Assembly: GCA_965240325.2 (NCBI GenBank)
Contig: OZ251223.1
Location: 4,216,001 to 4,280,000, forward strand
Reading direction: 5' to 3'
DNA from: Rebecca billardiae RCC1528
Taxonomy: Eukaryota; Protista; Haptophyta
DNA length: 64,000 nucleotides
Below, piece by piece: positions 11,897 to 35,686 of the stretch. The notes beneath the pieces were generated by a model. It was not told the DNA's origin. It ran no database searches and saw nothing but the letters and a program-made list of their open reading frames with translations. Each line of letters opens with the position of its first letter. Within the stretch, counting starts at the first letter, position 1. The position numbers and the translations under genes are program-made.

Positions 11897-12242
11897 CGTC
11901 GACGCAGCACTCAGCAGCCCTGCAAATTACAGTTTACTCTGATTTTAATGATGCTTGCGCTCGTCTTCTGCTCGATCGACGTATTTACCCTGCTGAGATC
12001 ATGATGCGGGCCAACCGTGACAATGAGTCACTACCATACAGTACTGTACAGCCAGCAGACTTGATGACACTACGGTGCGCCGGTCTGTTTTGTGGCGGTG
12101 TCTACTTCAATGTGCAGTGTTGGATGGCGTCAATCACGCCAAGGTTAATTCAGGCCGCAGGTCTGGAGCCGGGAGAGTGCGCAGACTCTGTGTGCCAGGA
12201 CACGCGACTCGCGTGTCACTCAGGCAGGCAGGCATGCGAGGC

Positions 12243-13587
12243 TCACAGCCCGGTCCGCTGCAGCAGCAGCCCGATGATGAGCGTGATGGGCACGCTCGAC
12301 ATCACGTACAGCACGAAGAGCAGCTGGCCCGTCTGCGCGGCGAGGCGCTGGTCGCCGGTCAGCCGCGCCATCATCACGAGGTTCTGCGCGGGCGGCATCG
12401 AGGCGCAGAGCAACAGTGTGAACTCGAGCACCGGGTTCTGCGCCGCCGAGGGCAGCAGCCGCAGCGCGCGCAGCGCCCAGAGGATCGCCCGCTGCAGCAG
12501 CGGGGAGAGCGCAAAGCGGCCTGCGCAAGGGGCCGCGCACGGCGCGGCGGGCGTGAGCGCTGTCGAAAGGCACCACGGCCGCGCCGCCCATGCGCACGCG
12601 GGCGCGGGGCAAGCGCGCACTCGCCATCACGCCACCAAGCATCGCGCGAGGCCCCAGCTCCCGCTCCTGCGCCTCCGGCGCAGGCTCGGACACCGCGTCA
12701 CCAGGCTGGCGTGCAGACGCGCCACTCACGAGCGAGCCGGCGAGTACAAGTAACGCGGCGGAGGAGCATCCGCGGCCGAGCCGCGCGCACGCGGCGAGCG
12801 CGATCTGCACGGGCGAGCGGCGCGCCTCGAGCAGCGCGCGCGGGCAGCACAGCCCGAGCAGCAGCCCGCTCAGCGCGGCCACGATCGGCGGCTGCAGCAG
12901 AGGAGCGAGCGCCCGGCGCCAGCGGGGCGCGCCCGCGGGCCCGGCAGGGCGCTCCCCGGCGAGCACGCCAGGCGCGATCGACCACAGCATCAGCGCCGCG
13001 CCCAGCTGGTACAGCGCTATGCAGCTCGCCGCAGAGGGCAGCACGGTCGGGTCTGCGTAGTGCGCGGGGTTGAAGAGCCCCTCACAGAAGCCGAGGGGCA
13101 GCACGGCGTTGTTGCCAAAGGACGAGAGCGCGGTGAATATGCGCGCGGATGCCGAGCTGCGCGGCACGCGCAGCACGCGCAGCACCAGCGCCGACACTCC
13201 CAGCGCCACGCTGACCTGCACCATTGCGCACAGAGGCAGCATCAGCATGCCGCCGCCCAGCCCGATCGTCGACACGGTCTTCACGACGTTCGAGAAGAGG
13301 AAGCACGGGAGGAGCACGTTGAACACGATGCGGGCGAGCTGGGTGATCGCGGCCGGCTCGACCAGCCCCCACGCGACCACGGCATACCCGACGCCCGCCG
13401 ACGCAATCAGCTCGCTCACCGCGACCAGCGAGGTCTCAAGCACCTGCGGCGAGAACGCTGCGAGCCCCGGAGCCGAGCTGACGATCGAGGAAGCGCGGCG
13501 TGCCGCGCGGAGGACAGGCGGCGCCCAGCCCGGCGCGAGCGCGAGCCCGAGCGCCAGCGCCGCCCACGCCGAGCGTGCACCGAGCAT
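12243..13587 (-). CDS. Auxin efflux carrier family (PILS/AEC-like) transporter, paralogue 1
   Basis: Intron 12521-12620; LLPCFLFS, FGNNAVLPL, SMPPAQNL; about 10 hydrophobic segments; alternative start at 13629. Confidence 0.85.
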
Positions 13588-13728
13588 GCGTCCTCGGCTG
13601 CTGCATCCGGCGGCGGCGGCGGCATGCATTTCCGCCTCACTTGTTGTAGCAGTGTTGCTTGATGTACTGTATCATACAGTATCATGGTACTGTACAGTAC
13701 CGTAGTACGTTCCGTATACATACTATGG

Positions 13729-13849: not shown

Positions 13850-14095
13850 TAAATATTTGTTTTATTAACGTGCGTAACACGCTCTCCGAAGAGAGACGAC
13901 CTGGAAACAGTGGTTTTGAACCCATGAGTCATGACTGACAGTCTCAGACGCAAGGCCAAGAGCACTTATTTATTTGTTTTAACGTGCGTGAAGGCCTCAC
14001 GGTGGCAGGTTGCCGCGCCATCCTTCATCGCACGCCTAGCTCCGAAGAGAGACCTGGAAACTGGTTTGAACCCATGACCTCAGACGCAAGAGCAC
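13850..14095 (+). repeat. Local tandem duplication (about 13850-13965 and 13966-14095) differing by short insertions
   Basis: ctccgaagagagac...cagacgcaag..agcac at 13884-13965 and 14040-14095; tatttgtttt..aacgtgcgt occurs twice. Confidence 0.85.
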
Positions 14096-14320
14096 GCCAG
14101 TACTCCCACTCGGCCACAATAATGTTGTCGCACGTATTGTACGTACACTGATGTATGCAGCATGGGCCCGCCCTGCTGGCTGAGCCCGGTGGTTGCAGAG
14201 CCGTGCGTGTCAGAGACAGAGTGAGTGTCGATCCTAGCTCGGCACATGCATGGCCTGGGCAGGGCGTGCAGCCGCGCAGAACACGCTCGCGCGCACCACC
14301 GGGCAAGGGGCGCGCGAAGC

Positions 14321-15728
14321 TCACAGCCCGGTCCGCTGCAGCAGCAGCCCGATGATGAGCGTGATGGGCACGCTCGACACCACGTACAGCACAAACAGCA
14401 GACGGCTCAGCCGCGTGGCGAGGCGCTTGTCGCCCGTCACCTGCGCGATCACCACGAGGTTCTGTGCGGGCGGCATCGAGGCGCAGAGCAACAGCGTGAA
14501 CTCGAGCACCGGGTTCTGCGCCGTCGAGGGCAGCAGCCGCAGCGCGCGCAGCGCCCAGATGATTGTGAGCTGCAGCAGCGGGGAGAGCGCGAAGCGGCCT
14601 GCGCAAGGGGGCGCGCACGGCGCGGCGGGCGTGAGCGCTGTCGAAAGGCACCACGGCCGCAACGCCCATGCGCACGCGGGCGCGGGGCAAGCGCGCACTC
14701 GCCATCACGCCACCAAGCATCGCGCGAGGCCCAAGCTCCCGCTCCTGCGCCTCCGGCGCAGGCTCAGGCTCCGCGCGCGCGAGCGCAGACGCGTCCGCGC
14801 CTGCCGACACGCGGGCTGATGCGCCACTCACGAGCGAGCCGGCGAGGACGAGCATGGCCGCCGGGGTGTACCCGCGGCCGAGCCGCGCGCACGCGGCGAG
14901 CGCGATCTGCACGGGCGAGCGGCGCGCCTCGAGCAGCGCGCGCGGGCAGCACAGCCCGAGCAGCAGCCCGCTCAGCGCGGCCACGATCGGCGGCTGCAGC
15001 AGAGGAGCGAGCGCCCGGCGCCAGCGGGGCGCGCCCGCGGGCCCGGCAGGGCGCTCCCCGGCGAGCACGCCAGGCGCGATCGACCACGCCACGGGCGACC
15101 AGCCAAGAAGGTACAGCGCCATGTAGCTCGCCGCAGCGGGCAGCACGGTCGGGTCTGCGTAGTGCGCGGGGTTGAAGAGCCCCTCACAGAAGCCGAGGGG
15201 CAGCACGGCGCTGTTGCCAAAGGACGAGAGCGCGGTGAATATGCGCGCGGATGCCGAGCTGCGCGGCACGCGCAGCACGCGCAGCACCAGCGCCGACACT
15301 CCCAGCCCCACGCTGATCTGCACCATTGCGCACAGAGGCAGCATCAGCATGCCGCCGCCCAGCCCGATCGTCGACACGGTCTTCACGACGTTCGAGAAGA
15401 GGAAGCACGGGAGGAGCACGTTGTACACGATGCGGGCGAGCTGGGTGATCGCGTCCGGCTCGACCAGCCCCGACGCGACCACGGCATACCCGACGCCCGC
15501 CGACGCGATCAGCTCGCTCACCGCGACCAGCGAGGTCTCAAGCACCTGCGGCGAGAACGCTGCGAGCCCCGGGGCCGAGCTGACGATCGAGGAAGCGCGG
15601 CGTGCCGCGCGGAGGACAGGCGGTGCAGTCCGCGAACCGAGCGTTGGCGGCGCCGCAACCGCGCACACTGGCCCGCTCGGCGTGAGCGCAAGCGCGAGCG
15701 CCGCCCACGCCCAGCGCACGCCCGGCAT
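14321..15728 (-). CDS. Auxin efflux carrier family (PILS/AEC-like) transporter, paralogue 2
   Basis: Intron 14599-14698 at the same position and length (100 nt) as in paralogue 1; FGNSAVLPL, GYTPAAMLVLAGSL, SMPPAQNL. Confidence 0.87.
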
Positions 15729-15880
15729 GCGGATTCCTCGCGTCATCAAGGGGCCGCAGCTCTCCAGGCAGTGCTTCCAAAGTGCTTCCAACCGTTCGCC
15801 TGCTGCAACGCACAGTGTGGTCCGGCCGCCCGACGGAGGATGACGACGTGGCCCGGACTGGGCTCGAACGTATCGCGGCG

Positions 15881-20400: not shown

Positions 20401-21415
20401 CGACTGCGAGGGCTACCGGCGCGCCTTCGACCTCGCCGGGCCGGGCGGCGCCGCGCTGATCCGGCTGCGCTTCTTCGAGTTCAGCGGCGAGCTGATCTTC
20501 CACTGCCACGTGCTCACGCACGAGGACGCGGGCATGATGGCGTACACGACAGTGGGCGAGGGCGCGGCGCCGCCTGCGCACGCGCTGGAGAGCGTGCCCA
20601 ACCTGTTCTCGTACAGCTGGCGCAAGGGCCCGTGCAAGGACGTCCTGCCCCGCCAGGAGTGCATGCGCCACTCGCGCGAGCGCCGCTGCTGGCAGCGGAG
20701 GGTGGCGAACACGTGCGCGCGCACGTGCGCGCTGTGCACGGACGCGCCGTGGCGCACGCGCGACCGCAAGGGCGCCTTCTACCTCTCCGACACCAACGAG
20801 CCGAGCGGGCCGGGCGGCTCAGCGGCCGGCCGCGTCACCGCGAGCGGCTCGGAGCCGGGTGGCGCCACGTACACGATCTTCCTCACCTCGCCCTCGCAGC
20901 TGCTCATGGCGCCGGGCACGACCGAGTGCGCGCGACGCGCCGCGCGACGCGCGCCCGACGGCGCGCGAGCCCGGCCCTGCGCGCGCGCGCCGCGCGGCTC
21001 CTCCGTCGGTCCGAGCGCGCCCGCCACGCCCTGGCGTGCGTCTGGCGCTCGCAGGTACGAGGACACCGTGCTCAACCCGCCGCTCTCGTCGGCGAATCCC
21101 TGGGGCAGCCAGTGGTCCCTCGCCTCCTTCCTGCGCGCCAGCGCCAACGCAGAAGAGCTCGGCGCCGAGGCGCGCGGCGCGCGCGGCGCCGTGTGGGCGG
21201 CAGCTGCGCTCGTCGCGCTCGGCGGCGCGCTCGCAGCGGGCGTTGGCGTCGCGCGCCGGCGCCAGCTGCAAGCACGCCGCGCTGCTGAGCGGGACTTTGG
21301 GCTCGCACGCGGCGGTACCACTCGCCGCCTGCATGTGGTCGGCACGGCCGGGATGGACGCGACTGACGGCGAGCTCGCGGACGGCAGCGAGGAGGCGAGG
21401 CCAGTGCTGCTCTGA
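17401..21415 (+). CDS. Multicopper oxidase with signal peptide, ShK domain and C-terminal TM
   Basis: Introns 17845-17967, 17995-18085, 18630-18778, 19186-19316, 19629-19837, 20006-20139, 20256-20355, 20926-21054. Copper motifs NLHVHG, FWYHPH, HIFHVH, FHCHVLTHEDAGMM; ShK CKD..C..C..CARTCALC. Confidence 0.9.
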
Positions 21416-21734
21416 GCGTCACGGCACGGGCGTCAGTCACGGGCCGCGCGATCCATCGCGGATGACGCGACGAGATCGAGGCGAGGAGTACGCGCGCGAT
21501 CAGCACGCGCCTGCAGCGCACCCCCGGTTGCACATCGCGGTGAGCCTCGACCGCGGCATCGAAGGAATCAATCAGCTGTCCATGAAGGCTGGGGCCACAG
21601 CGATGAGCGCCTCGATGCGGCAGCGGAGGCTGCGGAGCAGATTTGCGGTCGTCAACCGCCTCGCCCGATTTCCCGATCGAATAAAAATGCGGTCCATGAA
21701 AAAGCGCGCGCTGCCTACGTCGATCGTCGGCACG

Positions 21735-22646
21735 ATGGCATCGGCACTGCCAGTACCCGTGATGCGCACACTGGTCGCGCTCGCGCTGGCGTGGTGCGCC
21801 GGCTGCGCGCGCGCGGCGCAGCCTCCGGCGGGGCGCGCGTCGTCGCGCTTGCCCGTCACCGTGCGCCGCGTCACGCCCGACGAGATGAGCGCGCTCTACC
21901 CCAACGACTGGCATGACGACCCGGCGCTGCGCTCGCGGCTGCTCTCGGACGTGGCGGCGCTCGTGGCATCCGGCTTGTTCGGCGAGAGCAACAACCCGCG
22001 CGCGGAGGTGGCGCTTCAGAAGCGCGTGTATACGGAGTACCTCCACCGCTTCGCCGTCTCGCCCGCCACCGAGCGTGCGCTCGTCGTCGCCTTTGATGCT
22101 GAGCGCGAGGCACCTGTCGGCAGTGTCGTCGTGGAGGTGTGCGCCGCAAGTGCAGACGCGCGCCGCGAGAACGAGCCGCTCGTTGAGCGCGATCCGTCGC
22201 GCCGCCCGGCGTGGCCGCGGCCGTGGGATCGACGCGACCCGCTCGCCGTCGCGCGCGCCCTGCTCGGCGCCGACGCTGACTCGGGTGCGGCCTCCAGCGG
22301 CGGCCCTGGCAGCGGCGACTTTGCCCCACGCGCGCTCGTGGACAGCCTGGTGGTGGCGGAGGATTGGCGCCGGGTCGGCGTGGGCGCCGCGCTGCTCGAG
22401 GAGGCGGAGCGGCTCGCGCGGGATTGGGGGCAGCCCGAGCTCCGCCTGCGCGTCGAGGCCTCGAACAGCGGCGCCCTCGCCTTCTACGGCGCGCTGGGCT
22501 ACGCATGCCCGACGGGCATGGCCGAGGTGGTGGGCGGGCGCAAGCTGGTGGCCGATGGCTGGGGATGCAAGTGGGCACCTGCGAGCGACACGGTGCTTCA
22601 AAAGGCGCTGGACGGCGCGAGCGGTGAAGCGGTCGTTGCGCACTGA
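21735..22646 (+). CDS. GNAT-family N-acetyltransferase with N-terminal signal/targeting peptide
   Basis: LVVAEDWRRVGVGAALL (motif A), LRVEASNSGALAFY; start at 21735 or 21762. Confidence 0.82.
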   Translation: MASALPVPVMRTLVALALAWCAGCARAAQPPAGRASSRLPVTVRRVTPDEMSALYPNDWHDDPALRSRLLSDVAALVASGLFGESNNPRAEVALQKRVYTEYLHRFAVSPATERALVVAFDAEREAPVGSVVVEVCAASADARRENEPLVERDPSRRPAWPRPWDRRDPLAVARALLGADADSGAASSGGPGSGDFAPRALVDSLVVAEDWRRVGVGAALLEEAERLARDWGQPELRLRVEASNSGALAFYGALGYACPTGMAEVVGGRKLVADGWGCKWAPASDTVLQKALDGASGEAVVAH

Positions 22647-22898: not shown

Positions 22899-23048
22899 TA
22901 GAGAGAGAGAGAGAGAGAGATCGAGAGAGAGAGTCTCACTCACTCATGTCTGAGAGAGACTCAATCCGAAGTCTCAGAGTGAGAGAGAGAGAGAGAGGCG
23001 AAAAACGGCGGCGGAGAAATTCTTATATATATATATATATATACATAT
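22899..23048. repeat. (GA)n and (TA)n microsatellite cluster
   Basis: Direct reading. Confidence 0.9.
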
Positions 23049-23049
23049 A

Positions 23050-23840
23050 AACTCTTGCTCATCTCGTCGCTCGTGCGGGCGGTGTTGGCGGATGCGGGCA
23101 CGCGGCAGACGCGCGGTGCTGACGATGGCGACGATCACTACTACGACGACGACGTGCATGCGCGCCCGCGCGGGCTCGCGTGCGCCTTCCCCTCCTGCAG
23201 GGACGGCGAGATGCTGGCACTCTCACACAAACCCTTGCTCATCTCGTCGCTCGGGCGGGCGGTGTTGGCGGATGCGAGCGCGCCTGAGCCGGTGACACGC
23301 GTTGCTGACGACGACGCTTTCTACATTTCCCTGCAGCAGCCCGCCGGCGGGCCGGGCTGCGACGTCGACTACACCCTCATCCGCTTCATCGACCTGAGCG
23401 CGCCAGGCGGCGCGCTCACTCTCCAAGCCCCTCTTCTGCAGCTGCGCGCCGCTAGGCCGGTACGCGGCGACGTGTACTACGACCTCATCTTCATCCAGGC
23501 GCCCACGCGGGCGCCCGGGGGCGACAGCCGCGGCTGTCGCTTCCCGCAGCTGCACGCCGCTAGGTCGGCAGGCGGCGACATCGACTACGACCTCAGCCTC
23601 ATCCAAGTGCTTCACCGGAAGGCGCTCGGCCGCGGCGGCATCTGCCGTCGCCGCCGCGTGCCCCAGGCCGAGGCGGTGCTCCATCCCGCCCCCGCTCCCG
23701 TAGGGGGGCAGGGCTGCGGGTGGCGCACTGCCTGACCTGGTCGGAAGGCGCGGACGCATTCTATATGTGTCTGCTGCACTCTGAGCCTGACGCTTGCCCG
23801 TTGCATACCACGTCGTTAAATATATATGTATATGTATATA
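23050..23840 (+). mobile_element. Repeat family A, longest copy b (about 780 bp), between (TA)n tracts, with internal duplications
   Basis: 3' end ccacgtcgttaaatatatatg; internal repeats cttgctcatctcgtcgctcg (23054, 23234) and gcagctgc.cgccgctagg..cggcgac..actacgacctca twice. Confidence 0.75.
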
Positions 23841-23854
23841 TTATTTAATGGCAG

Positions 23855-24123
23855 TAGGTCGGCGGGCGGCGACATCGACTACGACCTCACCCTCATCCAA
23901 GTGCTCCGGAAGGCGCTCGGCCGAGGCGGCATCTGCCGTCGCCGCCGCGTGCCCCAGGCCGAGGCGGTGCTCCGGCCCCGGGCCCCGGCCCCGCTCCCGT
24001 AGGGGGGCAGGGCTGCGGGTGGCGCACTGTCTGACCTGGACGGAAGGCGCGGACGCATTCTATGTGTCTGCTGAACTCTGAGCCTGACGCTTGTTCGTTG
24101 CTGCCACGTCGTTAAATATATAT
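23855..24123 (+). mobile_element. Repeat family A, copy c (5'-truncated)
   Basis: Aligns to about 23560-23825 and ends ccacgtcgttaaatatatat. Confidence 0.8.
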
Positions 24124-24138
24124 TTAAGCTAAGGCCGC

Positions 24139-24561: not shown

Positions 24562-27134
24562 TCAAGCACTCGGCGGCACAGCACATGATGCTGCCGACGG
24601 CGACGCGCCTCCAAGGTGTAGCACGGCAGCTGCGGCGGTCATGGCGCCAGATGTTGTCGTCACCGAGCTGGCGACGAAGCCGAGCGTATTTGCCGCGCCT
24701 GCGATGCTGGCAACCACCATCAGCCCTCCATACGTGGCGGCGAGCGCGAGCGCGCGCCGAGGCACGCTCTGCGCAGCAGCAGTGGCCAGACCGCTGTCGA
24801 TGGCCTCCTTGATGGCGAGCAGCCCGCCCGGGCCCGTCAGCGCGTACAGGTCGAAGCCGCCCGACTCGGTGCGGCGCGTGGTCTTCATGATGTGCGCGAG
24901 CACCGCCGGCTCGGCTGCGTGGAGCGCGCGCATCGGTGCGGCAAGCACGTGCGCGAGTGCGTGGAGGAGTGTGCCCGAGCGGCGCAGCGGCGGCGGCAGC
25001 GCTGCCTTCAGGATCGACGCGTACGCCGATGCGACGACGCCGTTGACGACGATGTCGCCGTGCAGCGTGATGGGTGCGTACAGCCCGACGCGCTGCACCT
25101 CCGAAACGGACGTCACTGCGGCGGAGACCGCGCCACCGCCGCCGCCAGAATCGACGACGCTCATCACCATGCCGACGCGCACGTCGTCAGCGCGCACGTA
25201 TGCGCCCTGCGCGAGGCGCGCGAGGTGGTCGGACGAGAGCTCGAGTGCGTGGCCGCTCGACAGCTCGACGCGCACGAACGCATGCTGCACGGTGGAGCGC
25301 CTGTCCTCGTGCGCGCTCAGGTACACGGTCGAGTACGCCGCGCCGCCGTCGACGAGCACGCGGTCACCCAGCTCGAGCGCGTCCATGCGCTTTGGGCCGG
25401 CAGGCGTCGTCACCGTTGCGTGGGCGGGGAAGCAGTTGGGAATGAGGCAGAAGCCCTCGTTCGTGCAGTGGTAGCCATCGCCGTTGTTGCCATCGCAGTC
25501 GCCAGCAGTTACACACTCGACGCACCGCCCAGCGCCCGTGTCGCAAAAGAAGTCGTGATTGCTGCCGGCGCCGGCGACAGCGTCGCAGTCGCTGTCCTGC
25601 AGGCACTGCACACACTCGCCGTTCGAGAGGTCGCACAGCCGCTCAGGGATCGCCCCCTGCTCGAGATAGCAGCCGTGCGGGAGTGATTCGCAGTCGGCAT
25701 TGGTCACACACTCGATGCAGGTGCCTGTGCCGTTGCCGCCACCAAGATTGAAGCACTGCAGCTTGTTTGCGTTGCCAGTCTGGCAGTCGGCAGTGATGGT
25801 GCACGCGGTGACAGGGTCCGCCGTGGACAGGCGCCGCCGCCCCCCAACCGGCACGGCGGACGACACCACGTACGCGCACGCCGGCTCGTCACAAATCTCG
25901 TCGTCGGCGCTCCACGCCTTGCACAGTGAGCGCGGCGCCGGGTCGGAGCAGCGCGCATCGCCCTCGAAGCAGTGGTAGATGAGGCATGGCTCCGGTCGCG
26001 GTGCCCCCCCAGCCTCGTGCAGCCTACGCCGCTCGTGGTCATCGAGCGACTCGTCCTCAGACAGGCGGCGGAGGCGGTCATTGACGTTGGGATCCGATTG
26101 GAGCACTTGGCCGTCGCCAGTGACCGTGTACAGCGCCGAGTCGCCGGGAACACCCGAGCGGAAGACGTACCACGTCTCGTCCTGGCCGTTGATCCGCTTG
26201 ACGTAGGACCTGATGAGCTCACCGGTGGCATAGAGCGTCTCAGGGGTCACCTCTGCGAGCTGGCGGAGGCTGCGGCGGCGCGCATTCGAAGACCCGACCT
26301 CGACGGTGCCCTGGGTCTGGCCCGAAGTATTCATGAGCTTGAGCACAGAGCTCATCACACTCGAGTTCACTTCGGCCACCTCGACCAGACGGCGGCCGTC
26401 GTGCTCGACCAGCCGCCTTCTCCGCTTGTCGTGCAGCTCGATGTGGGGCCTGGCACCCGTCGTGCGTGCGGGCTGGCCGTCCGCCCCAAGCTGCACGCCC
26501 GTCTCGCTGTCAACGAATGCCTGGTGTGTCGCCCGTCCCGCGCGCGTGACACGGGTGGCATGAGCAATTGAGCGGCGCGAAGCAAGGTGGCGTGGTCTGC
26601 ACTCCTGACGAGACTTGTTGTGGGCGGGCAGGGACTTCGCACACGTGCTCGCGCGCGTGCGGCGGACCTCCTTCGAGAGCTCGCCCGCCAGCACGGCGGC
26701 GCCAAACATCGCGCCCAGGAGCACTGCGATAGACACGCACAGGACGGCGCTCAGAAACTGGTACTTGCGCTTGGTCTTCTTCTCGACCAACACCTCGGCG
26801 CAGATCGTCTTGACCTCCGCTGCCGAGAACTTGCCATCGTGGTTCTGCATGCCACCACCATCAGGACGCGGGAGGGGCAGGAGGGGGCGGGGTGGCGCGC
26901 GCTGTCAGGCGGGCACATGGGCTGACAGCTGCAGGGGCTGTGCGTCAGCGCGCTCACCAGATCGTACTTTGCGAGCGTGCGCTCGACGGCGTCGATCTTG
27001 CCGTCATTGTCCGCATCGTACATCGCCAGCTCCTCTACCCTCACTGTGTTGGTGCGAGAGGTCACGCCCGGCTCGCGCGCTGACGCGCCATCAGTGTTGC
27101 CAGTGCGCTTGAAGAGCCCGGCGACGCCCTGCAT
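24562..27134 (-). CDS. Hint-domain protein A: two EF-hands, TM, RRL-separated modules, Cys-rich repeats, Hedgehog-type Hint, hydrophobic tail
   Basis: Introns 26845-26957 and 26521-26667. EF loops DADNDGKIDAVE and DLNHDGKFSAAE; Hint N-CFPAHATV..LELGDRVL..LELSSDH..GLYAPITLHGDIVVNGVVASAY starting at 25434. Confidence 0.88.
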
Positions 27135-27719
27135 GCTTCCCCGTCCTCGTCACGACTTGCGATGTGTGGCACAGCGGCGCCTGCAGCCCCGCCCGCCGTC
27201 GATGACGAACTTTCGCCGGGCGGATCGTGCTCCTACTACTGTGAATGAGTATTCTCATACTGTACCCAGAATTGGCAGGGTCTCGTTGGTTTGGCGTCCA
27301 TCTTAAATCAGCCAATCAGGCCATTGGCCATAGCATGTACGTATAGTATCATACACACACCATCATGATTCATGACTGTATCGCGACCTGCATGGGTAGG
27401 GTTTGGCAGTGGAGAGCCTGTCGTTGACCATGATGCAGACTGGACGATGATGAGCCGAGCGGTACCTGTAAGTTATGCATGCCTGAGGCTATATTAGCCA
27501 GATGTATTGACGAAAAATCTCAATCGTCATCATCATGAGTTACTTTTCTTTAGTACGAGGCTTCTGAGAGTACTTTACGACGCGAAGATTGGCGCGCATG
27601 TGATGGATTATCATAGTCATGAACACCGGTTGGAAGTTAAAGTGTGGGACGGGCGACCGCGAAGGCCGAGCGAGACAGCGAGTGAGGAAAGCGGAGCGGC
27701 CCACGACCTAAGGCCGAGG

Positions 27720-30203
27720 ATGACGAGCTTCTTTCGAGGCGTCGGCGAGATGTTTGGCGGCGGCGGCGGCGCTGCGGGCGAGCCAGCTGCCCCCCAGCGG
27801 ACGGCGACGTCCTCGCAGCGCGATCGGCACCAAACTCGCGGCACTCGGAAGACCTCGACCTCGTCGGCGTTCACGTACGACGCGGACGGTGACGGTACAC
27901 TCGACCCGCTGGAGCAGATGCTCAAGGACTACGATGTGGTGCGGCGCAGCTCTCGCGCAGAGCGCGTTTAAAGTGCGCGACCCCACTGCCTCGCGCATAC
28001 GCCGCTCATGACTCGCCTCATCTGCGCGCACTGGCTTTCTTTGCGCTCGGGCCCGGCCCCGCAGGACGGCAACCACCGCTACTCGACCGCCGAGGTCAAG
28101 GCGATGGTGCAGGCGATGCTCGAGCACCGAGAGGGCGGACAGAGGTACAGGCGTCTTGCTGCTGTTCTCGCTGCTGTTTTCGTCGCGCTCATCGCGAGCA
28201 TCTTTGGCACTGCCTACCTCGCGAGCGATGTCACCAAGGAGGTGCGCACAGCGCGCAAGCAGTGGGCGACTGCGCGTGAGATCCTCAGCCTCATCATTGA
28301 TCATGGCCGCCCGGCTCACCCTTAGGCACGCCCTTGCGCCGCACGCGCGCACCTCGCGCCACGGCTGAGTCGCGCTCACCCCACCTGCCCGCTGTGCGCG
28401 CTCTGGATGATGCCCGCACTCACTCTCTCGCGCTCGCGCCTTGCGCATCAGACATTCCTGAGCTCTGGCTCGAACCTGCTCACCGACAGGGACGGGCGCG
28501 GGGTGATGTTCGGCGCCAACCTCGTGCGCGCGACGCAACACGACGACACGCGGCGGCGCCTGCGCGTGGTCGGCGGACGCCAGCTCGTGGAGGTGGGCGA
28601 TGTCGACCCAACGCAGGTCCAGGGGGTGATCGACGCCATCAACAACAACGTGACGAGTGGCACCGTGCTGATCAGCACAGGCGGCTCTTCCTCCTCCCGC
28701 CGCCGGCTCCAGGACTTGGGTACTGCGCTGTCGATGCTGACGGCATCGGGCTACCTGGTCGCCATCCAGGTGATCGATGGCGCAGTGTACTACCAGGTGA
28801 CGCAGGCTGGCGGCGGCGGTCCGTCGTACTGGCTCACCTCAAGCGGAGCCGTCCTCTCGCAAAGCCCAAGCAGGCGGCTGCGCCGGCTGGACGCGGCCGA
28901 CTCGTACGACCACCACCGCCAGCGCCGGCTGGCGGAGGGCGGCAACGGCACGACGTCCGCGCACTGGCCGCCCAAGTGCTTCGTGTACCATTGCTTCGAA
29001 GGCGACGCGGGCTGCACCGAGCCCTCGCCGAGGTCGTTGTGCGCCACGTGGAGCGCGGATGGCGCGGAGTGCCTCGAGCCTACGTGCGCATTTGTGGACG
29101 CTGGACATGCAGCGCGCCACGAAGCGCGCCGCCGGCTGGAGACCACATCCTGCACCGGCGATGCCGACTGCGAGGCCAACTGCTACACCGAGCACTACGT
29201 CGTCCCGAAGCGGAAATGCGTCTCCGGCAGCTGCGTCGAGTGCAGCGCCGATGCCGACTGCACCACAAGGACCACGCCATCTGGTGACTACGACGATGAT
29301 CTGCTGCGAGGCTGCGACGGAGGCGTGTGTGTCAAGTGCAACAAGGCCAAGCAATGCGCACGCTCGTGTGAGGACTCGGATTGCGAAGACTGCTTCCCCG
29401 CGCACGCGACGGTGACGACGCCTGCCGGCCCTAAGCGCATGGACGCGCTCGAGCTGGGTGACCGCGTGCTCGTCGACGGCGGCGCGGCGTATTCGACCGT
29501 GTACCTGAGCGCGCACGAGGACAGGCGCGCCGCCGTGCAGCATGCGTTCGTGCGCGTCGAGCTGTCGAGCGGCCACGCACTCGAGCTCTCGCCCAACCAC
29601 CTCGCGCGCCTCGCGCAGGGCGCATACGTGCGCGCTGACGACGTGCGCGTCGGCATGGAGATGAGCGTCGTCGATTCTGGCGGCGGCGGTGGCGCGATCT
29701 CCGCCGCAGTGACGTCCGTTTCGGAGGTGCAGCGCGTCGGGCTGTACGCACCCATCACGCTGCACGGCGACATCGTCGTCAACGGCGTCGTCGCATCGGC
29801 GTACGCGTCGATCCTGAAGGCAGCGCTGCCGCCGCCGCTGCGCCGCTCGGGCACACTCCTCCACGCACTCGCGCACGTGCTTGCCGCGCCGATGCGCGCG
29901 CTCCACACAGCCGAGCCGGCGGTGCTCGCGCACATCATGAAGACCGCGCGCCGCACCGAGTCGGGCGGCTTCGACCTGTACGCGCTGACGGGCCCGGGCG
30001 GGCTGCTCGCCATCAAGGAGGCCATCGACAGCGGTCTGGCCACGACGGCTGCGCAGAGCGTGCCTCGGCGCGCGCTCGCGCTCGCTGCCACATATGGAGG
30101 GCTGATGGTGGTTACCACCATTGCCGGCGTCGCCAACGCCGTCCGCAGCGCCGCCAGCTCGGCGACATCGGTACTTGCGGCTGCGCGGCTGGCGAGCCCG
30201 TGA
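27720..30203 (+). CDS. Hint-domain protein B, paralogue of A with the same architecture
   Basis: Introns 27939-28064 and 28242-28451 at positions homologous to A. EF loops DADGDGTLDPLE and DVDGNHRYSTAE; Hint D-CFPAHATV starting at 29391. Confidence 0.88.
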
Positions 30204-30324: not shown

Positions 30325-30614
30325 ATATATATATATATATATATCTTTAACGACGTGGCAGCAACGAACAAGCGTCAGGCTCAGATCGAGTGCAGCAGAC
30401 ACATAGAATGATGCGTCCGCGCCTTCCGTCCAGGTCAGACAGTGCGCCACCCGGGGACGGGCACCCGCAGCCCTGCCAGTGCCCCCCTACGGAGTACGGG
30501 AGCGGGGCCGGGGTGGTTGGTGGAGCACCGCCTCGGCCTGGGGCACGCGGCGGCGACGGCAGATGCCGCCGCGGCCGAGCGCCTTCCGGAGCACTTGGAT
30601 GAGGGTGAGGTCGT
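30325..30614 (-). mobile_element. Repeat family A, copy e (inverted, 5'-truncated) with (TA)n tail
   Basis: Reverse complement acgacctcaccctcatccaagtgctccggaaggcg...cttgttcgttgctgccacgtcgttaaagatatata. Confidence 0.8.
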
Positions 30615-30793
30615 AAGATAAGATTCATCAATAAGTGTATTACGAAGTTGACGATGTTCGATGCGTGGACGGAGGGGTGGGTGCTGATGGCCCCTGATGT
30701 GTGGCTGAATGACCCGTGAGGTGGCCACGTGACAGAGCGTCAGTGACTACGGTACTGACGGTTGGACGTTGGTCGGCGAAACTCGGCGCCCTC

Positions 30794-31135: not shown

Positions 31136-33283
31136 ATGCTTCCACAATCCAGATGCGAGGCGACGCGCGTGCAGCGTCGCCAGGGCAGACGGCTCTCGCT
31201 GCGCGGAGGGGCGGCGAGTGTCGCGGCAAGCACTAGCACGCTCGACCGTCCGCCCTCCCCGTGGGGCGAGTACACGTTTGGGCGCGTGGTCGGGCGCGGG
31301 CGCTTTGCCGACGCGCGGCTCCTCGTGCATGACGAGCACGGCGAGGCGGACCCGTCGCGCGTGTACGTGTTGAAGCAGCTTGCGGATGGCTCGGTTGAGT
31401 CCGACTCGGCCGATTGCTGCCTTACAACCGCGCAGGCTGCCGCGCGCGAGGTTGAGATCCTCTCGCTGCTGCGCCACCCAAACGTGCTGCGTTGCTGTGG
31501 CGCGTTCGCGGCCGCGGGCGTGATCTCGATCGTGACGGCGCCGTACGCGGACGGCGGTACGCTCGAGGCGCGGCTGCGCAAGCATGCGCGCGCGGCCAAG
31601 CCGCTCGACCGCGCTCTCGTGTGCGGCTGGGCCTTCGAGCTCGCGTCCGCGCTGCAGCACATCCACGCGCGCGGCGTGCTGCACCGGGACCTCAAGGCGG
31701 CGAACGTCCTCCTCGCCTCGGGGGCGGCGCTGGCACGGCGTGAGGCGGGGCCGGCGTTGGAGGAGTGGCAGCTGCACCTGCGCGAGCACGTGCTCATCGC
31801 CGACTTTGGCGTCTCGAAGCGCGTGCATGTGCGCGCGCGTGAGGACGCCGGACGCGTCGCGTCCGGTGAGGGCGCGCACGAGCGTGGCTTGCACACGCCC
31901 GCGCCGGAGGCGGAGGCGGAGGCGGAGCGCGAGCACGCGGGCACTTGCATCGGCACGCCGTACTACCTCAGCCCCGAAGTCGTCCTCGGCCGGCCGTACG
32001 GCTCGAAGAACGACGTGTGGTGCCTGGGCGTCGTGCTGTACGAGACGCTGGCGCTGCGCCGCCCGTTCGAGGGCGCCAACATCAGCGCGCTCGCGCAGGC
32101 GATCGTGGGGAGCGAGCCGGCGCCGCTGCCGCTGCACGCGCCGCCGGGGCTCGTGCGGCTTGTGGGCGCGATGCTGGCGAAGAACTGCGCGCGCCGCGCC
32201 TCCTCGGCACAGGTGCTGCGCGCAGCCAAGGCGGTGGCGCGTGCCGCGCGCGCCGTCGGCGCCGAGCGCGCTGCCGCCTCCGCCTCACACCAGCTGCCTG
32301 CGCGCGCCCCACCGCCGCTCAAGCGGCCGTCGAGCGAAGCGCTGTCGCTCGTGCCGCGCGAGTCGTTTGCGTCGTGCCTGTCGCACCAGCCTTCCTTCCA
32401 GTCCGTCGCCGCCGAGCCAGCGGAGGACGAGCCGGCTGCCGATCCCGACCCGGACCTGGCCGCCGCCGAGCTCGACACACCGCGCAGCTCGAGGCGCCGA
32501 GCACGCGATGGAGCCGTGATGGACGCACGGGGGCCGCCCGCGCTGAGCACTGCGCACTCGGCGCCATCCGCGTCGGCGCTGGGCTCGCCCGTTGCCGCCA
32601 CGCGCGCGCACTCGCTCGAGGTCACGGAGGCGCACGGTGCTGCCCCTGCGCGCGTCGCCGCTGATGCGGACCCAGACCCAGATGACGCGGACGGTGCGGC
32701 CGCTCGCACGACGCGTCGCCCGGCGTTCCGCGGCGTGCTGCGCGCCGCCGGCTTGGAGCGCGTCACCGACGCGACGGCCGACGACGACGAAGATGGCGAC
32801 AGCGACACAAGCTCGACGGTGGCCTCGCGCTGGCCTGTGTGGCGCGGGCGCGCTCGCCCAGCTGGCGCAGACGCGCTGCTCGGCAGCGGCCAGCGCTGCC
32901 CCAGGCGCGTGCGCCTGTGTGCGCCGGCTGCAGAGGCAGATGGCGCGGCGGGCGCGGGAGCAGCGAGCGCGTCCACGGCTGCGCGCGCGAGCTCAGTGTG
33001 CTCAAGAGGACCAGCTGCGTCGCCGATCGAGACCGACGCCGCTGTGCTCCCGCCGCGGCGCGCGGGGCGAGCGCTGCACGCAGCCTCGAGGCTGTCGTCC
33101 GACGGTCCGTTGCGCGGCGCCGCGCGCACCAAGCCGTGGGAGGCAGGCTGGGCCACACGCCTGCTGAGGCTGTTCAGCGGTGGTGGCGGAAGCAGCGTCT
33201 GCGCCAGCGTGTGCCGACTCGAGCTGCGGCCTCGCGCACTGGCACTGCGCTCTGTGGCGAACACTTCCTGTCCGCCTGTGTAG
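31136..33283 (+). CDS. NIMA-related (NEK-like) Ser/Thr protein kinase with insertions and a low-complexity C-tail
   Basis: GRGRFA, YVLK, HRDLKAANVLL, ADFGVSK, GTPYYLSPE, YGSKNDVWCLG. Confidence 0.88.
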   Translation: MLPQSRCEATRVQRRQGRRLSLRGGAASVAASTSTLDRPPSPWGEYTFGRVVGRGRFADARLLVHDEHGEADPSRVYVLKQLADGSVESDSADCCLTTAQAAAREVEILSLLRHPNVLRCCGAFAAAGVISIVTAPYADGGTLEARLRKHARAAKPLDRALVCGWAFELASALQHIHARGVLHRDLKAANVLLASGAALARREAGPALEEWQLHLREHVLIADFGVSKRVHVRAREDAGRVASGEGAHERGLHTPAPEAEAEAEREHAGTCIGTPYYLSPEVVLGRPYGSKNDVWCLGVVLYETLALRRPFEGANISALAQAIVGSEPAPLPLHAPPGLVRLVGAMLAKNCARRASSAQVLRAAKAVARAARAVGAERAAASASHQLPARAPPPLKRPSSEALSLVPRESFASCLSHQPSFQSVAAEPAEDEPAADPDPDLAAAELDTPRSSRRRARDGAVMDARGPPALSTAHSAPSASALGSPVAATRAHSLEVTEAHGAAPARVAADADPDPDDADGAAARTTRRPAFRGVLRAAGLERVTDATADDDEDGDSDTSSTVASRWPVWRGRARPAGADALLGSGQRCPRRVRLCAPAAEADGAAGAGAASASTAARASSVCSRGPAASPIETDAAVLPPRRAGRALHAASRLSSDGPLRGAARTKPWEAGWATRLLRLFSGGGGSSVCASVCRLELRPRALALRSVANTSCPPV

Positions 33284-33775: not shown

Positions 33776-35476
33776 TCAGTCGTCGCCGGCGACGCTCTGC
33801 ACCGGCGGCGGCGCGCCGTCACTCGCCGGCGCCGCCAGCGCCGCCGCCGGCTTGGCGGCACCATCGAAGCGCAGTGAGAGCGCGAGCGTGAAGCCCGCCA
33901 CGAGCGCGAGGAAGTAGAAGGGCGCGTGGAAGTCGAGCGGGAAGGGCCACTCGTTGTGCGCGAACGCTGCGAAGAAGGAGCCCATCGCCGTCGGCGCGAG
34001 CGCGCGCGCGAGCGCGCTGATCGACTGCGCCAGCCCGTTCACCAGCCCGACGTGCGCGTGCAGCAGGTTGTTCATCAGCACGCTCACCGAGGTGAAGGCG
34101 GAGATGCCGGCGATGCCGCGCAGCACGGACACGCACGTCAGCGCGGACCACAGCGCGAGCGGCGAGCGCGCGCGGGCGACGCGCAGCGCGGGGATGCACC
34201 CCATCACCACGAAGAAGACGCACATGCCCAGCCGGAAGCACGCGACCGTGCCAAACCGCCGGTCGAGCCGGGTGAAGGCAAACGGCCAGACCAGCAGGCT
34301 CACGCCGAGCGGGGCGAGCGCCGTGCCCACCTGCGAGGGCTCGAGGCCGAGGCCGTGCTCCTCGTTGGCGCAGAAGAGCGGGAAGAGCTCCTGCATGCCC
34401 GACACGAGGAAGTTGAGGAAGAACTGCACGTAGATGCTGAACATGACGCCGCCGCACAGGAAGGCGCGCGCGGCCGGCCCGACGCAGCGCGCGCGCCGCG
34501 CGCCGCGCGCGCGCGCGTCGCGCCGCTTGAGCAGCGCGTCGTCGTCCTCGTCGGGCGGCGCGTTCGGCAGCGGCGCCAGCACGTCAGCCCGCGCCATCTC
34601 GATCGCCGCGTGCGGCGGCGGCGGCGAGGGCGGCGGCGACGGCGCGCCGCTGCGCCCGCCGCCGGGCGGCGGCTGCGCCTCGTCCGCGCCCACCTCCACG
34701 TCCGGCGGCAGCGGCGGCAGCGCGGCCTCCGCGCGCGCGGGCGGCGCGGGCTCGTCGGCCCGCTGCAGCGCGCGCGAAGCGGCGCGGTCGCCCGCGCGAG
34801 CGCTCCCGCGCGGCTTCGCCGCGCGCGGCGGCTCGCGCAGGAACCCGACGAAGCACAGCCCGACGACCGTGCCGGCCGTCGACGCGATACACGGCAGCAG
34901 GTATGGGTGGCGATCAAAGACGCTCCCGCGGAACAGGGAGGGCAGCGTGTCGGCGGGCTGGCTGAGCAGGCCGCCCATCGCCGGGCCGACCATCGCGCCG
35001 GCGCCGTATGCCACGCCGAGCACGGAGAAGCCGCGCGTGCGGTTGGACTCGCTCGTCATGTCGCGCATCGCCGCGCGCGCCACGCCCGTGTTGCCGTTGA
35101 GCAAGCCGCCCAGGCAGCGCGCGAGCATCGCGCGGCCGAGCGTCTTGCTCATGCCGAAGAGGACCATCGACGTCGCGGTGCTGACGAGCCCGACAATCAG
35201 GATCGGCCGCCTGCCGTGCACGTCCGACAGCCTGCCCCACACGAAGCTGCTCAGGAAGTTGCACGCGTTGTACGCGGACGCGAGCGCGCCCGCCCAGTAC
35301 CCGACCTCGTCGTCCGCGATGCCAAAGCTGGCGACCATGAAGGGCACGAAGGGGTAGAGGACGCACTGCACGATCGCGTCGCTCAGGGTCACCGCGCACA
35401 CGCAGAACACCTGCAGCCTCGGGAGCGCATCCTCGTCATCTACCGGGCGATTGCCTTCCGCCCGCGCTTCCGCCAT
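33776..35476 (-). CDS. MFS transporter (ZIFL/DHA1-like)
   Basis: Motif A WGRLSDVHGRRP, ARCLGGLLNGN, GPAMGGLL; 12 TM with Pro-rich central loop. Confidence 0.9.
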   Translation of the reverse strand: MAEARAEGNRPVDDEDALPRLQVFCVCAVTLSDAIVQCVLYPFVPFMVASFGIADDEVGYWAGALASAYNACNFLSSFVWGRLSDVHGRRPILIVGLVSTATSMVLFGMSKTLGRAMLARCLGGLLNGNTGVARAAMRDMTSESNRTRGFSVLGVAYGAGAMVGPAMGGLLSQPADTLPSLFRGSVFDRHPYLLPCIASTAGTVVGLCFVGFLREPPRAAKPRGSARAGDRAASRALQRADEPAPPARAEAALPPLPPDVEVGADEAQPPPGGGRSGAPSPPPSPPPPHAAIEMARADVLAPLPNAPPDEDDDALLKRRDARARGARRARCVGPAARAFLCGGVMFSIYVQFFLNFLVSGMQELFPLFCANEEHGLGLEPSQVGTALAPLGVSLLVWPFAFTRLDRRFGTVACFRLGMCVFFVVMGCIPALRVARARSPLALWSALTCVSVLRGIAGISAFTSVSVLMNNLLHAHVGLVNGLAQSISALARALAPTAMGSFFAAFAHNEWPFPLDFHAPFYFLALVAGFTLALSLRFDGAAKPAAALAAPASDGAPPPVQSVAGDD

Positions 35477-35686
35477 CGCGCATCTTCTGATGTCGTCGCA
35501 AGCCGGCGCCTGCCAACTCCAAACTCGCCAGCACAGTCCGGCGCCCCTGCCAAGCCGCAAGCGACACACGCACGGCTTTTCTCCGGACAAGCGGTTGATG
35601 CATCGAAACATTCAATTTCGAAAATCCGGCCGGGCAATTTGAACGGGCCCGTCCTCACGGTCGTCACGCCCGACTCCCCCGGCATC

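Follow-up and report, generated by a model that had tools for sequence, protein, structure and literature searches.

A divergent gene pair of the haptophyte Rebecca billardiae predicted to encode type II membrane pro-proteins with a Hedgehog-type Hint domain and conserved R-x-L motifs

Proteins with a Hog domain occur in many protists, including the haptophyte Pleurochrysis haptonemofera, whose hPh Hog1-3 were described from three expressed sequence tags (ESTs) in which cysteines are conserved upstream and the Hog part is more strongly conserved than the remainder (Buerglin 2008, PMC2362128). The Hog cassette is also found on lineage-specific cargo in the warthog, groundhog and quahog proteins of nematodes and in GmGIN1 of Glomus (PMC2362128). 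R-x-L-type maturation has been described in diatoms, where an unknown protease cuts off a segment that ends in RRL from the RXL-domain proteins (silaffins, cingulins and Silicanin-1; PMC5525289), and in apicomplexans, where PEXEL/TEXEL sites at the N- or C-terminal ends of substrates are cut after the Leu by plasmepsin V in Plasmodium or by Toxoplasma ASP5 in the endoplasmic reticulum (ER)/Golgi (PMC4764566). The present work concerns a pair of genes in which elements resembling both systems are combined, located at positions 24562-30203 of a 64,000-nucleotide stretch (hereafter the window) of contig OZ251223.1 (positions 4,216,001 to 4,280,000, assembly GCA_965240325.2) of the haptophyte Rebecca billardiae RCC1528.

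This region contains two divergently transcribed three-exon genes, A on the minus strand and B on the plus strand. Gene models were made by reading open reading frames (ORFs) in the DNA and joining GT..AG introns. Gene A (coding span 24562-27134; exons 27134-26958, 26844-26668 and 26520-24562) predicts a product of 770 residues, and gene B (27720-30203; exons 27720-27938, 28065-28241 and 28452-30203) one of 715 residues. The two ATGs are separated by a spacer of 585 bp (27135-27719), which we infer to be a shared bidirectional promoter with both 5' untranslated regions; its GC content is lower (0.57-0.60), and the genome of this alga is very GC-rich. An earlier note on this DNA had described divergent paralogues 585 bp apart with the same intron positions, and the models agree with it.

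The explanation that we favour by a small degree is that A and B are type II pro-proteins in which the Hint domain cleaves itself and some R-x-L sites are processed, with gene conversion acting on the Hog cassettes. The core of the family would consist of one or more cytosolic EF-type loops, a signal-anchor helix, a luminal beta-rich domain and a six-cysteine (6-Cys) module, to which A and B would add Cys-rich repeats and then a Hog cassette made of the Hint domain, a helix resembling the sterol recognition region (SRR) and a second transmembrane (TM) helix. As the charges and the lack of a signal peptide suggest, the proteins would insert in type II orientation, leaving the loops in the cytosol and placing the remainder in the lumen. 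In the ER, the Hint domain would then perform an N-to-S acyl shift at Asn480-Cys481 (A) or Asp445-Cys446 (B), and the resulting thioester would be resolved. The likeliest acceptor would be a hydroxyl-bearing lipid such as a sterol, since the Asp general base and the SRR-like motif are both kept. The conserved catalytic residues suggest that the outcome would be detachment of the ectodomain from the membrane-tethered Hint fragment. A weaker suggestion is that the R-x-L motifs in exposed loops are candidate sites at which an RXL/TEXEL-like protease might trim or shed the ectodomain, namely site 5, site 2 and perhaps site 1 as numbered below, with sites 3 and 4 more likely to be part of the fold. 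Finally, gene conversion keeps the two inverted Hog cassettes near-identical, as shown by the discordant similarity of the gene halves described below.

The Hint module of gene A lies at 25018-25434 on the minus strand, with the codon of its nucleophile, Cys481, at 25432-25434, and that of gene B lies at 29391-29807 on the plus strand, with Cys446 at 29391-29393. Both match Pfam PF01079 far over the cut-off of 29.7 bits (A, 91.7 bits, E 6.5e-26; B, 94.8 bits, E 7.1e-27), and their best solved-structure matches are Drosophila Hedgehog-C (1AT0/6TYY) and human SHH. The sequence C-F-P-A-H at the Hint start aligns with the nucleophile C258 of Hedgehog (Hh). The Asp of H-E-D-R-R (25297-25311 in A, 29514-29528 in B), which is kept in A, B and their nearest relative, P0001, aligns with M-D-R-N of Hh at the D303/D46 position. 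In Hh autoprocessing, this Asp activates the sterol hydroxyl. The S-x-x-H motif, present as L-S-S-D-H-L in A (25222-25239) and as L-S-P-N-H-L in B (29586-29603), aligns with T-P-A-H-L of Hh (T326/H329), with Ser in place of Thr, and motif J (G-x-Y-A-P-x-T-x-x-G ... S-C-Y-A) is found at 25018-25086 in A and 29739-29807 in B. A structure model of the Hint domain of another relative, P0004, was predicted at a pLDDT (predicted local distance difference test) of 90-96 and has Hh-C as its closest fold (6tyy/1at0; E 4e-12, TM-score 0.86, root-mean-square deviation 2.2 A). Given the retained Cys nucleophile, Asp base and S-x-x-H motif, the Hint domain of A and B looks catalytically competent, and its self-cleavage, as judged from the alignment, is likely. 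The earlier note had proposed a Hedgehog-type Hint domain followed by a hydrophobic tail, and had raised the prospect of a catalytically dead Hint; the first proposal holds, the tail reaching a Kyte-Doolittle peak of 1.74, and the kept catalytic residues point to a Hint that is active.

The N-terminal parts carry two Ca-binding-type loops each, at 26982-27017 (residues 40-51) and 26815-26963 (residues 58-69, split by intron 1) in gene A and at 27879-27914 (residues 54-65) and 27933-28094 (residues 72-83, split by intron 1) in gene B. Each loop matches 12 of the 13 PROSITE PS00018 positions, and the strict PS00018 pattern is matched by no loop of A or B. Ligands at loop positions 1, 3, 5, 9 and 12 together with Gly at position 6 are present in both A loops and in B loop 1, and B loop 2 has His at position 6. 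The Pfam EF-hand family stays below its cut-off for exon 1 in the window (E 0.02) and for the spliced relative L001 (21.6 bits against a cut-off of 25.9; E 1.4e-4), and the cut-off is passed by family members P0005 (32.5 bits) and P0007 (27.6 bits). In A and B only six residues lie between the loops, whose starts are 18 apart rather than the ~36 of canonical EF-hand pairing, so that no canonical four-helix EF pair is possible and the label of an EF-hand pair is not justified; from the predicted sequence, one short helix serves both loops. Across the family, the conserved loop is the membrane-proximal one only, and the P0004 model contains a single helix-loop-helix whose exiting helix runs on as the TM helix (pLDDT ~90). 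It is thus the cytosolic Ca2+ sensor with two EF-hand loops, as first proposed, that has to be narrowed: loops of the Ca-binding type are present on what is predicted to be the cytosolic side, with Pfam scores below threshold and no canonical pair, and "cytosolic Ca2+-binding module" appears a reasonable description. A dockerin-like reading of the loop pair had weak Pfam matches alone (E 0.02-0.13) and was not adopted.

Directly after the loops, the first hydrophobic helix forms the predicted signal anchor (gene A, 26683-26757, residues 89-113; gene B, 28155-28214, residues 104-123), with Kyte-Doolittle peaks of 2.5-2.6 in the two proteins. In gene A it is flanked by basic residues (KKTKRK) on its N-side and by acidic residues on its C-side. 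No signal peptide was found in either product. On the basis of the basic N-side, the acidic C-side and the missing signal peptide, A and B are predicted to insert N-in, as type II proteins, which supports the single-TM type II precursor proposed at the outset.

Between the anchor and the Hint domain lies a cargo that defines a wider family. A profile of the region before Hint of A, B and P0001 was searched against 1.84 billion representatives and recovered 47 proteins at E<1e-3, of which 20 were at E<1e-10. The order of elements in the family begins with the EF loop or loops, the TM helix, G-x-V-x-T-x-x-G, RRRL, G-R-x-L-V-E-V and a beta-rich stretch, and continues with R-x-L-R-x-L-S/T-x-x-E, RRRL and a 37-residue 6-Cys module that starts C-x-V-Y-H-C-F, the part that varies least across the wider family. 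In gene A this module (25876-25986, minus strand; 37 residues, C-x2-Y-H-C-F ... C-x3-C) is modelled at a pLDDT of 87-92, and in gene B it lies at 28977-29087 on the plus strand. It is followed by Cys-rich repeats, originally noted as C..DADC and present in both proteins as C-x2-C-x3-4-DC units, four in A (25435-25803) and about three in B (29151-29390). Pfam contains no family for the 6-Cys module, the Cys repeats or the region before Hint. Dickkopf-N/DUF7107-like Cys-rich proteins of Myxococcota gave weak feature-search matches (scores <= 0.70), a lead for the Cys repeats that was not used. Three stand-alone proteins of 200-480 residues among the hits of the profile search (P0042, P0048 and P0050) consist of almost nothing other than C-x2-C-x3-4-DC repeats, similar to those ahead of Hint in A and B, and have no Pfam match.

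Many family members stop shortly past the 6-Cys module and have no Hint domain. The Hedgehog-type Hint is found in a subset made up of A, B, P0001, P0004 and P0014, and a more divergent Hint is present in P0012, P0019 and P0008. In the latter three, the domain starts C-F-S/D-R-x-x-x-V-A-C, and a further Cys follows the nucleophile at a distance of nine residues. P0012 scores over the Pfam cut-off and P0019 under it, and the three may form a Hog subtype of their own attached to the same cargo. The nearest relative, P0001, shares 44% identity across exon 3. The named sources of the family are the coccolithophore Scyphosphaera apsteinii and Pavlovales sp. CCMP2436 only, the rest coming from marine assemblies. 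In Pavlovales sp. CCMP2436 (MU631704.1; L002 2218-3648 and 6001-7226), a Hint gene with C-x2-C-x3-DC repeats, a Hint domain interrupted by introns, an A-H-x3-S-P-x-R helix and a hydrophobic tail is followed 3.4 kb downstream by a 6-Cys gene that carries R-L-R-R-L-S-E, the rest being hidden by assembly gaps. The family tree has long branches and is not informative on whether Hint was gained once or several times. A and B belong, as old paralogues, to a family that has not been described and whose only named source is the haptophytes.

The luminal domain of both proteins is rich in RRL motifs. In gene A (25828-26421, minus strand) these are site 1 (26410-26421), a GRRL (26386-26394), site 2 (RRSL, 26266-26277), site 3 (26062-26070), site 4 (26020-26031) and site 5 (25828-25839), and in gene B (28551-29138, plus strand) they lie at 28551-28562, 28698-28709, 28872-28889 (double), 28923-28931 and 29127-29138. 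RRL occurs five times before Hint in A, six times in B and four times in P0001, compared with an expectation of 0.08-0.16 from 20,000 shuffles, none of which reached the observed count, and the density is 7-10x that of other long open frames in the window. The family as a whole keeps sites 1, 3 and 4; site 5, past the 6-Cys module, is present in many members, and site 2 in the closest group only. At site 4, among 22 aligned members, Arg165 is invariant and Leu167 near-invariant, while the middle residue is R, K, H or Q. As read from this alignment, the invariant Arg at P3, the near-invariant Leu at P1 and the variable middle residue make the conserved pattern R-x-L and not dibasic, so that the proprotein-convertase sites once assumed for the basic RR pairs were set aside. 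By analogy, R-x-L would fit sites of the RXL/PEXEL/TEXEL type better than dibasic convertase sites. The position of site 1, which sits about 38-44 residues beyond the anchor in A and B and is conserved in the family, and the ends of the Hint-less members, which fall 41-49 residues past the first Cys of the 6-Cys module where eleven longer members have an RRL at +45 to +55, favour processing at some sites. Taken together, the odds of cleavage at one or other RRL site are close to even, leaning slightly towards no cleavage.

The most serious alternative to this is that the RRL motifs are not cleavage sites and have a structural or ligand-binding role, such as Arg-Leu packing or binding of acidic polysaccharides, which we regard as somewhat doubtful though well worth weighing. 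In the model of the gene A ectodomain (pLDDT 69.9), three of the five sites (1, 3 and 4) lie in a hairpin, a strand and a helix predicted at a pLDDT of 81-89 and packed with the 6-Cys module, and only sites 2 and 5 lie in loops with a pLDDT <50; the P0004 model agrees on sites 1, 4 and 5. The segment ahead of site 1 is itself conserved, which speaks for a structural role, and several other members that run past the 6-Cys module have no RRL there, which speaks against processing. The models are moderate (pLDDT 69-70, shallow alignments), which leaves the buried or exposed calls for RRL uncertain and so also detracts from the choice of exposed candidate sites made above. On the other side, the R-x-L is strict, with almost no Lys or Ile/Val at the fixed positions over deep divergence, the distance from site 1 to the anchor resembles that in diatom RXL domains and PEXEL proteins (PMC5525289, PMC4764566), and site 5 coincides with the natural C-terminus of short members. 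For the fold of the luminal domain, nothing significant was found in the PDB with Foldseek (best E 0.035) or in AlphaFold DB clusters, matches in the ESM Atlas had a TM-score <= 0.33, and a wide VIA-align comparison reached a best Z of 4.3 (profilin/PsbP/DcrB-like) with no fold named.

The post-Hint region of gene A (24562-25017, minus strand) contains a helix H-x2-A-H-x3-A-P-x-R (24919-24963) resembling the SRR or adduct recognition region (ARR), followed by a conserved block, S-G-G-F-D...G-P-G-G-L-L-A-I-K, that is shared with P0001 (24796-24864) and by a second hydrophobic helix (24685-24753). That of gene B (29808-30203, plus strand) has an ARR-like helix at 29862-29906, the conserved block at 29961-30029 and the second hydrophobic helix at 30072-30140. 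A weak phmmer alignment continues from the Hint domain into the SRR of human SHH (residues 308-405), sharing H..AH...AP.R..HA at E 0.0014, and the predicted region is likely an SRR/ARR. A glycosylphosphatidylinositol-anchor reading of the hydrophobic tail was dropped, as 20-40 more residues follow the hydrophobic stretch. A lipid adduct on the ectodomain is a tentative proposal, held with slightly less confidence than cleavage at some RRL site.

The competing possibility is that Hint merely hydrolyses its thioester, or is slow or inactive, so that the ectodomain is separated from, or stays tethered to, the C-terminal anchor and carries no lipid. It has several observations in its favour, some of which also count against our main reading. 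In A and B, Ala takes the place of the second conserved Cys of motif J, a replacement that is also reported for several non-animal Hog domains, and no adduct has been established for Hog proteins other than animal Hedgehog (PMC2362128). Counting against the main reading, the residue preceding the Hint Cys is Asn, Asp or Ala instead of Gly, and Thr326 of Hh is replaced by Ser in A and B, although this change is conservative. The PF01079 match spans profile positions 12-168 of 213, the likeness to SRR is weak, and the post-Hint tail alone has no match in the PDB. Moreover, the Hint-less members end where cleavage by Hint or at site 5 would leave the long members. Set against these points, the Asp at the sterol-activating base position of Hh is kept in A, B and P0001, the H..AH...AP.R motif follows the Hint domain, and the TM helix of the Hint fragment itself would keep Hint at the membrane. 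We consider plain hydrolysis or inactivity unlikely on this balance.

Less probable still is the scheme put forward in the earlier note, in which a polyprotein is cut at about six RRL motifs by a dibasic convertase and the last Cys-rich module is released as a sterol-modified, Hedgehog-like ligand. The strong enrichment of RRL at aligned positions, its presence on both sides of the 6-Cys module and a Hint that looks active, to judge by its residues, would all suit such a scheme. The wholesale cutting is weakened, with sites 1, 3 and 4 placed within folded elements in the gene A model (P0004 agreeing on 1, 4 and 5) and a conserved Arg at P3 and Leu at P1 in place of a dibasic pair. Among Hint-bearing members, the stretch from the last RRL to the Hint Cys varies in length from 3 to about 130 residues and lacks conservation, and since it is three residues in P0004, a lipidated last module cannot be what the family makes in general; Hint is also absent from many members. 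The idea of a signalling system finds no support, as no Hedge (HH_signal) domain was matched by Pfam at E<=1 on either ORF, and no pathway gene lies among the neighbours.

The gene models are very probably correct, and their predicted splicing rests on frame, a rebuilt EF loop and relatives with a single ORF. The four introns (A, intron 1, 26845-26957, 113 nt, and intron 2, 26521-26667, 147 nt; B, intron 1, 27939-28064, 126 nt, and intron 2, 28242-28451, 210 nt) are all GT..AG, all phase 0 and at matching positions, and exon 2 is 177 nt long in both genes. Intron 1 falls inside the second EF loop in A and in B, and its splicing was accepted because only the spliced form recovers the reading frame and rebuilds the loop (D-L-N-H-D-G-K-F-S-A-A-E in A, D-V-D-G-N-H-R-Y-S-T-A-E in B). 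Intron 2 is placed after K-E, just past the first hydrophobic helix; it contains stop codons in gene B and is in frame and stop-free in gene A, where its retention would add 49 Arg/Thr/Ser-rich residues just after the TM helix. Unspliced, gene A is covered on the minus strand by an ORF of 762 residues (24562-26850) and, upstream of it, one of 127 residues (26751-27134), and gene B by three successive ORFs on the plus strand (27507-27971, 28008-28325 and 28407-30203).

Indirect evidence on both introns comes from relatives. A 2537-nt contig encoding P0001 (L001; JGI sample 3300016936) ends in a short run of A's and has the EF-loop/TM part uninterrupted across the intron-1 position, and this polyadenylated transcript contig keeps a 158-nt GT..AG intron at the exact K-E codon of intron 2. 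The more distant P0004 (608 residues) and P0014 (598 residues) are single ORFs on 2-kb contigs, open through both exon-junction positions, and each carries an EF loop, TM helix, RRL domain, 6-Cys module and Hint. For the alga itself, no RNA run was listed for 26300-28700. The only runs that contained any part of the locus, three of one 2024 sample, gave a single 236-nt contig colinear with the genome, and scans of metagenomes with the family alignment and with the exact spliced junction of gene A found no match. That the EF/TM exons are separate short genes and the Hint ORFs begin at internal ATGs is nevertheless very improbable: the 762-residue ORF of gene A does start at an ATG in intron 1 (ATG 26850, six bases before exon 2) and reaches exon 3, but the second EF loop and the frame are recovered by splicing alone, the 177-nt exon is common to both genes, the relatives join all of these elements in one ORF, and gene B exon 3 without exons 1-2 would have neither signal peptide nor anchor.

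The two halves of the genes have different histories. An inverted repeat of 778 nt with 96% identity, starting at the Hint Cys codon, has its left arm at 24659-25436 and its right arm at 29389-30166; its first 241 codons contain eight synonymous and nine non-synonymous differences. No nucleotide similarity was detectable between the 5' halves of A and B. In the region before Hint, identity is 38.8% between A and B, 46.6% between B and P0001 and 34.7% between A and P0001, and a tree of this region places B with P0001, which is from another organism, to the exclusion of A (A,(B,P0001); support 97/92). In contrast, Hint plus tail is 90% identical between A and B and 59-61% identical between either of them and P0001. 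This discordance between the two halves shows that the duplication is old and that gene conversion between the inverted copies later made the Hog cassettes uniform.

Downstream of gene A there are tandem units of about 105 and 300 nt (23044-24126), and one inverted copy of them, 81-99% identical, lies downstream of gene B (30325-30615), with AT-rich, TA-dinucleotide-rich stretches next to these repeats. The flanking inverted repeats give the locus a palindrome-like outline that extends beyond the coding repeat. The surrounding ORFs encode a protein with a GNAT acetyltransferase domain (20859-22646, plus strand), a protein kinase (31136-33283, plus strand; Pkinase E 5e-36) and a major facilitator superfamily (MFS) transporter (33776-35611, minus strand; E 3e-37). 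Elsewhere in the window, two ORFs at 12220-13629 and 14025-15791, both on the minus strand, match Pfam Mem_trans (auxin-efflux-carrier-like, E about 1e-13) and are a probable tandem duplication, and an ORF at 911-3361 (plus strand) has fibronectin type III domains (E 3e-19). The neighbouring kinase, MFS, GNAT and transporter genes include no pathway gene and give no hint of function.

To our knowledge, no function is known for Hog-domain proteins outside animals. Here, the cargo of the Hog cassette is conserved and can be defined, and related proteins have it without Hog, so that the two kinds can be compared to ask what the cassette adds. If the R-x-L sites are cut, R-x-L maturation would reach haptophytes, a third major lineage, and this could help to identify the unknown algal protease. 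The Ca-binding loop placed directly on the TM helix suggests a simple route from a Ca2+ signal to an extracellular module, and the locus is a clear case of domain-limited gene conversion, with a tract that begins at the first Hint codon. A more speculative extension, which we think unlikely as it stands, is that the family as a whole represents haptophyte-wide, Ca2+-responsive type II pro-proteins whose ectodomain is matured at R-x-L motifs by a protease of the PEXEL/TEXEL or diatom RXL kind, and in which the ectodomain of the Hog-bearing subset is first esterified to a membrane lipid and the RRL just upstream then acts as a shedding site. If lipid anchoring followed by shedding did occur, it would join two maturation routes known only separately and provide a unicellular counterpart of the lipid anchoring and release of a Cys-rich extracellular module.

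Compared with animal Hedgehog (Drosophila Hh and human SHH), A and B share the Hint fold, the Cys, the Asp and the hydroxyl-x-x-His, together with a weak similarity to SRR motif K and a predicted luminal location of Hint, and differ in having no Hedge domain, a type II anchor instead of a signal peptide and an extra TM helix after Hog. Like the diatom RXL proteins, they have an RRL about 30-40 residues past an ER-targeting hydrophobic segment and a Cys-containing luminal domain (PMC5525289), but they belong to another lineage, show no sequence homology that could be found, and have several RRL motifs per protein, some predicted within folded elements, whose cleavage is only predicted. The strict Arg and Leu recall PEXEL/TEXEL (RRL-x-x or R-x-L-x-E), although those motifs are export and maturation signals of parasite effectors. 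As in the nematode and Glomus Hog proteins, Hog-less versions of the cargo exist in the same lineage (PMC2362128), whereas the cargo is unrelated and a cytosolic EF-hand together with a signal anchor has been described for none of those proteins.

The closest comparison is with the Hog proteins of other protists, which likewise have a Hint plus SRR/ARR cassette C-terminal to an unrelated, fast-evolving N-part with conserved cysteines, and in which the motif J Cys is often replaced (PMC2362128). Unlike A and B, those sequences are EST fragments and were described as a secreted N-domain plus Hog (PMC2362128). A signal anchor with cytosolic EF-type loops, an RRL domain, a 6-Cys module, a second TM helix past the Hog cassette and Hint-less family members are without report for them. 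In the literature that was searched, we found no description of the layout of signal anchor and cytosolic EF-type loop on a Hog protein, of the RRL domain and 6-Cys module as a family with and without Hog, or of the second TM helix. The earlier suggestion that the architecture belongs to no characterised protein is upheld to that extent, and has to be qualified by the protist and haptophyte Hog proteins with upstream cysteines that were already on record (PMC2362128). The Hog class in protists is already known; the cargo of A and B is new and their membrane layout undescribed.

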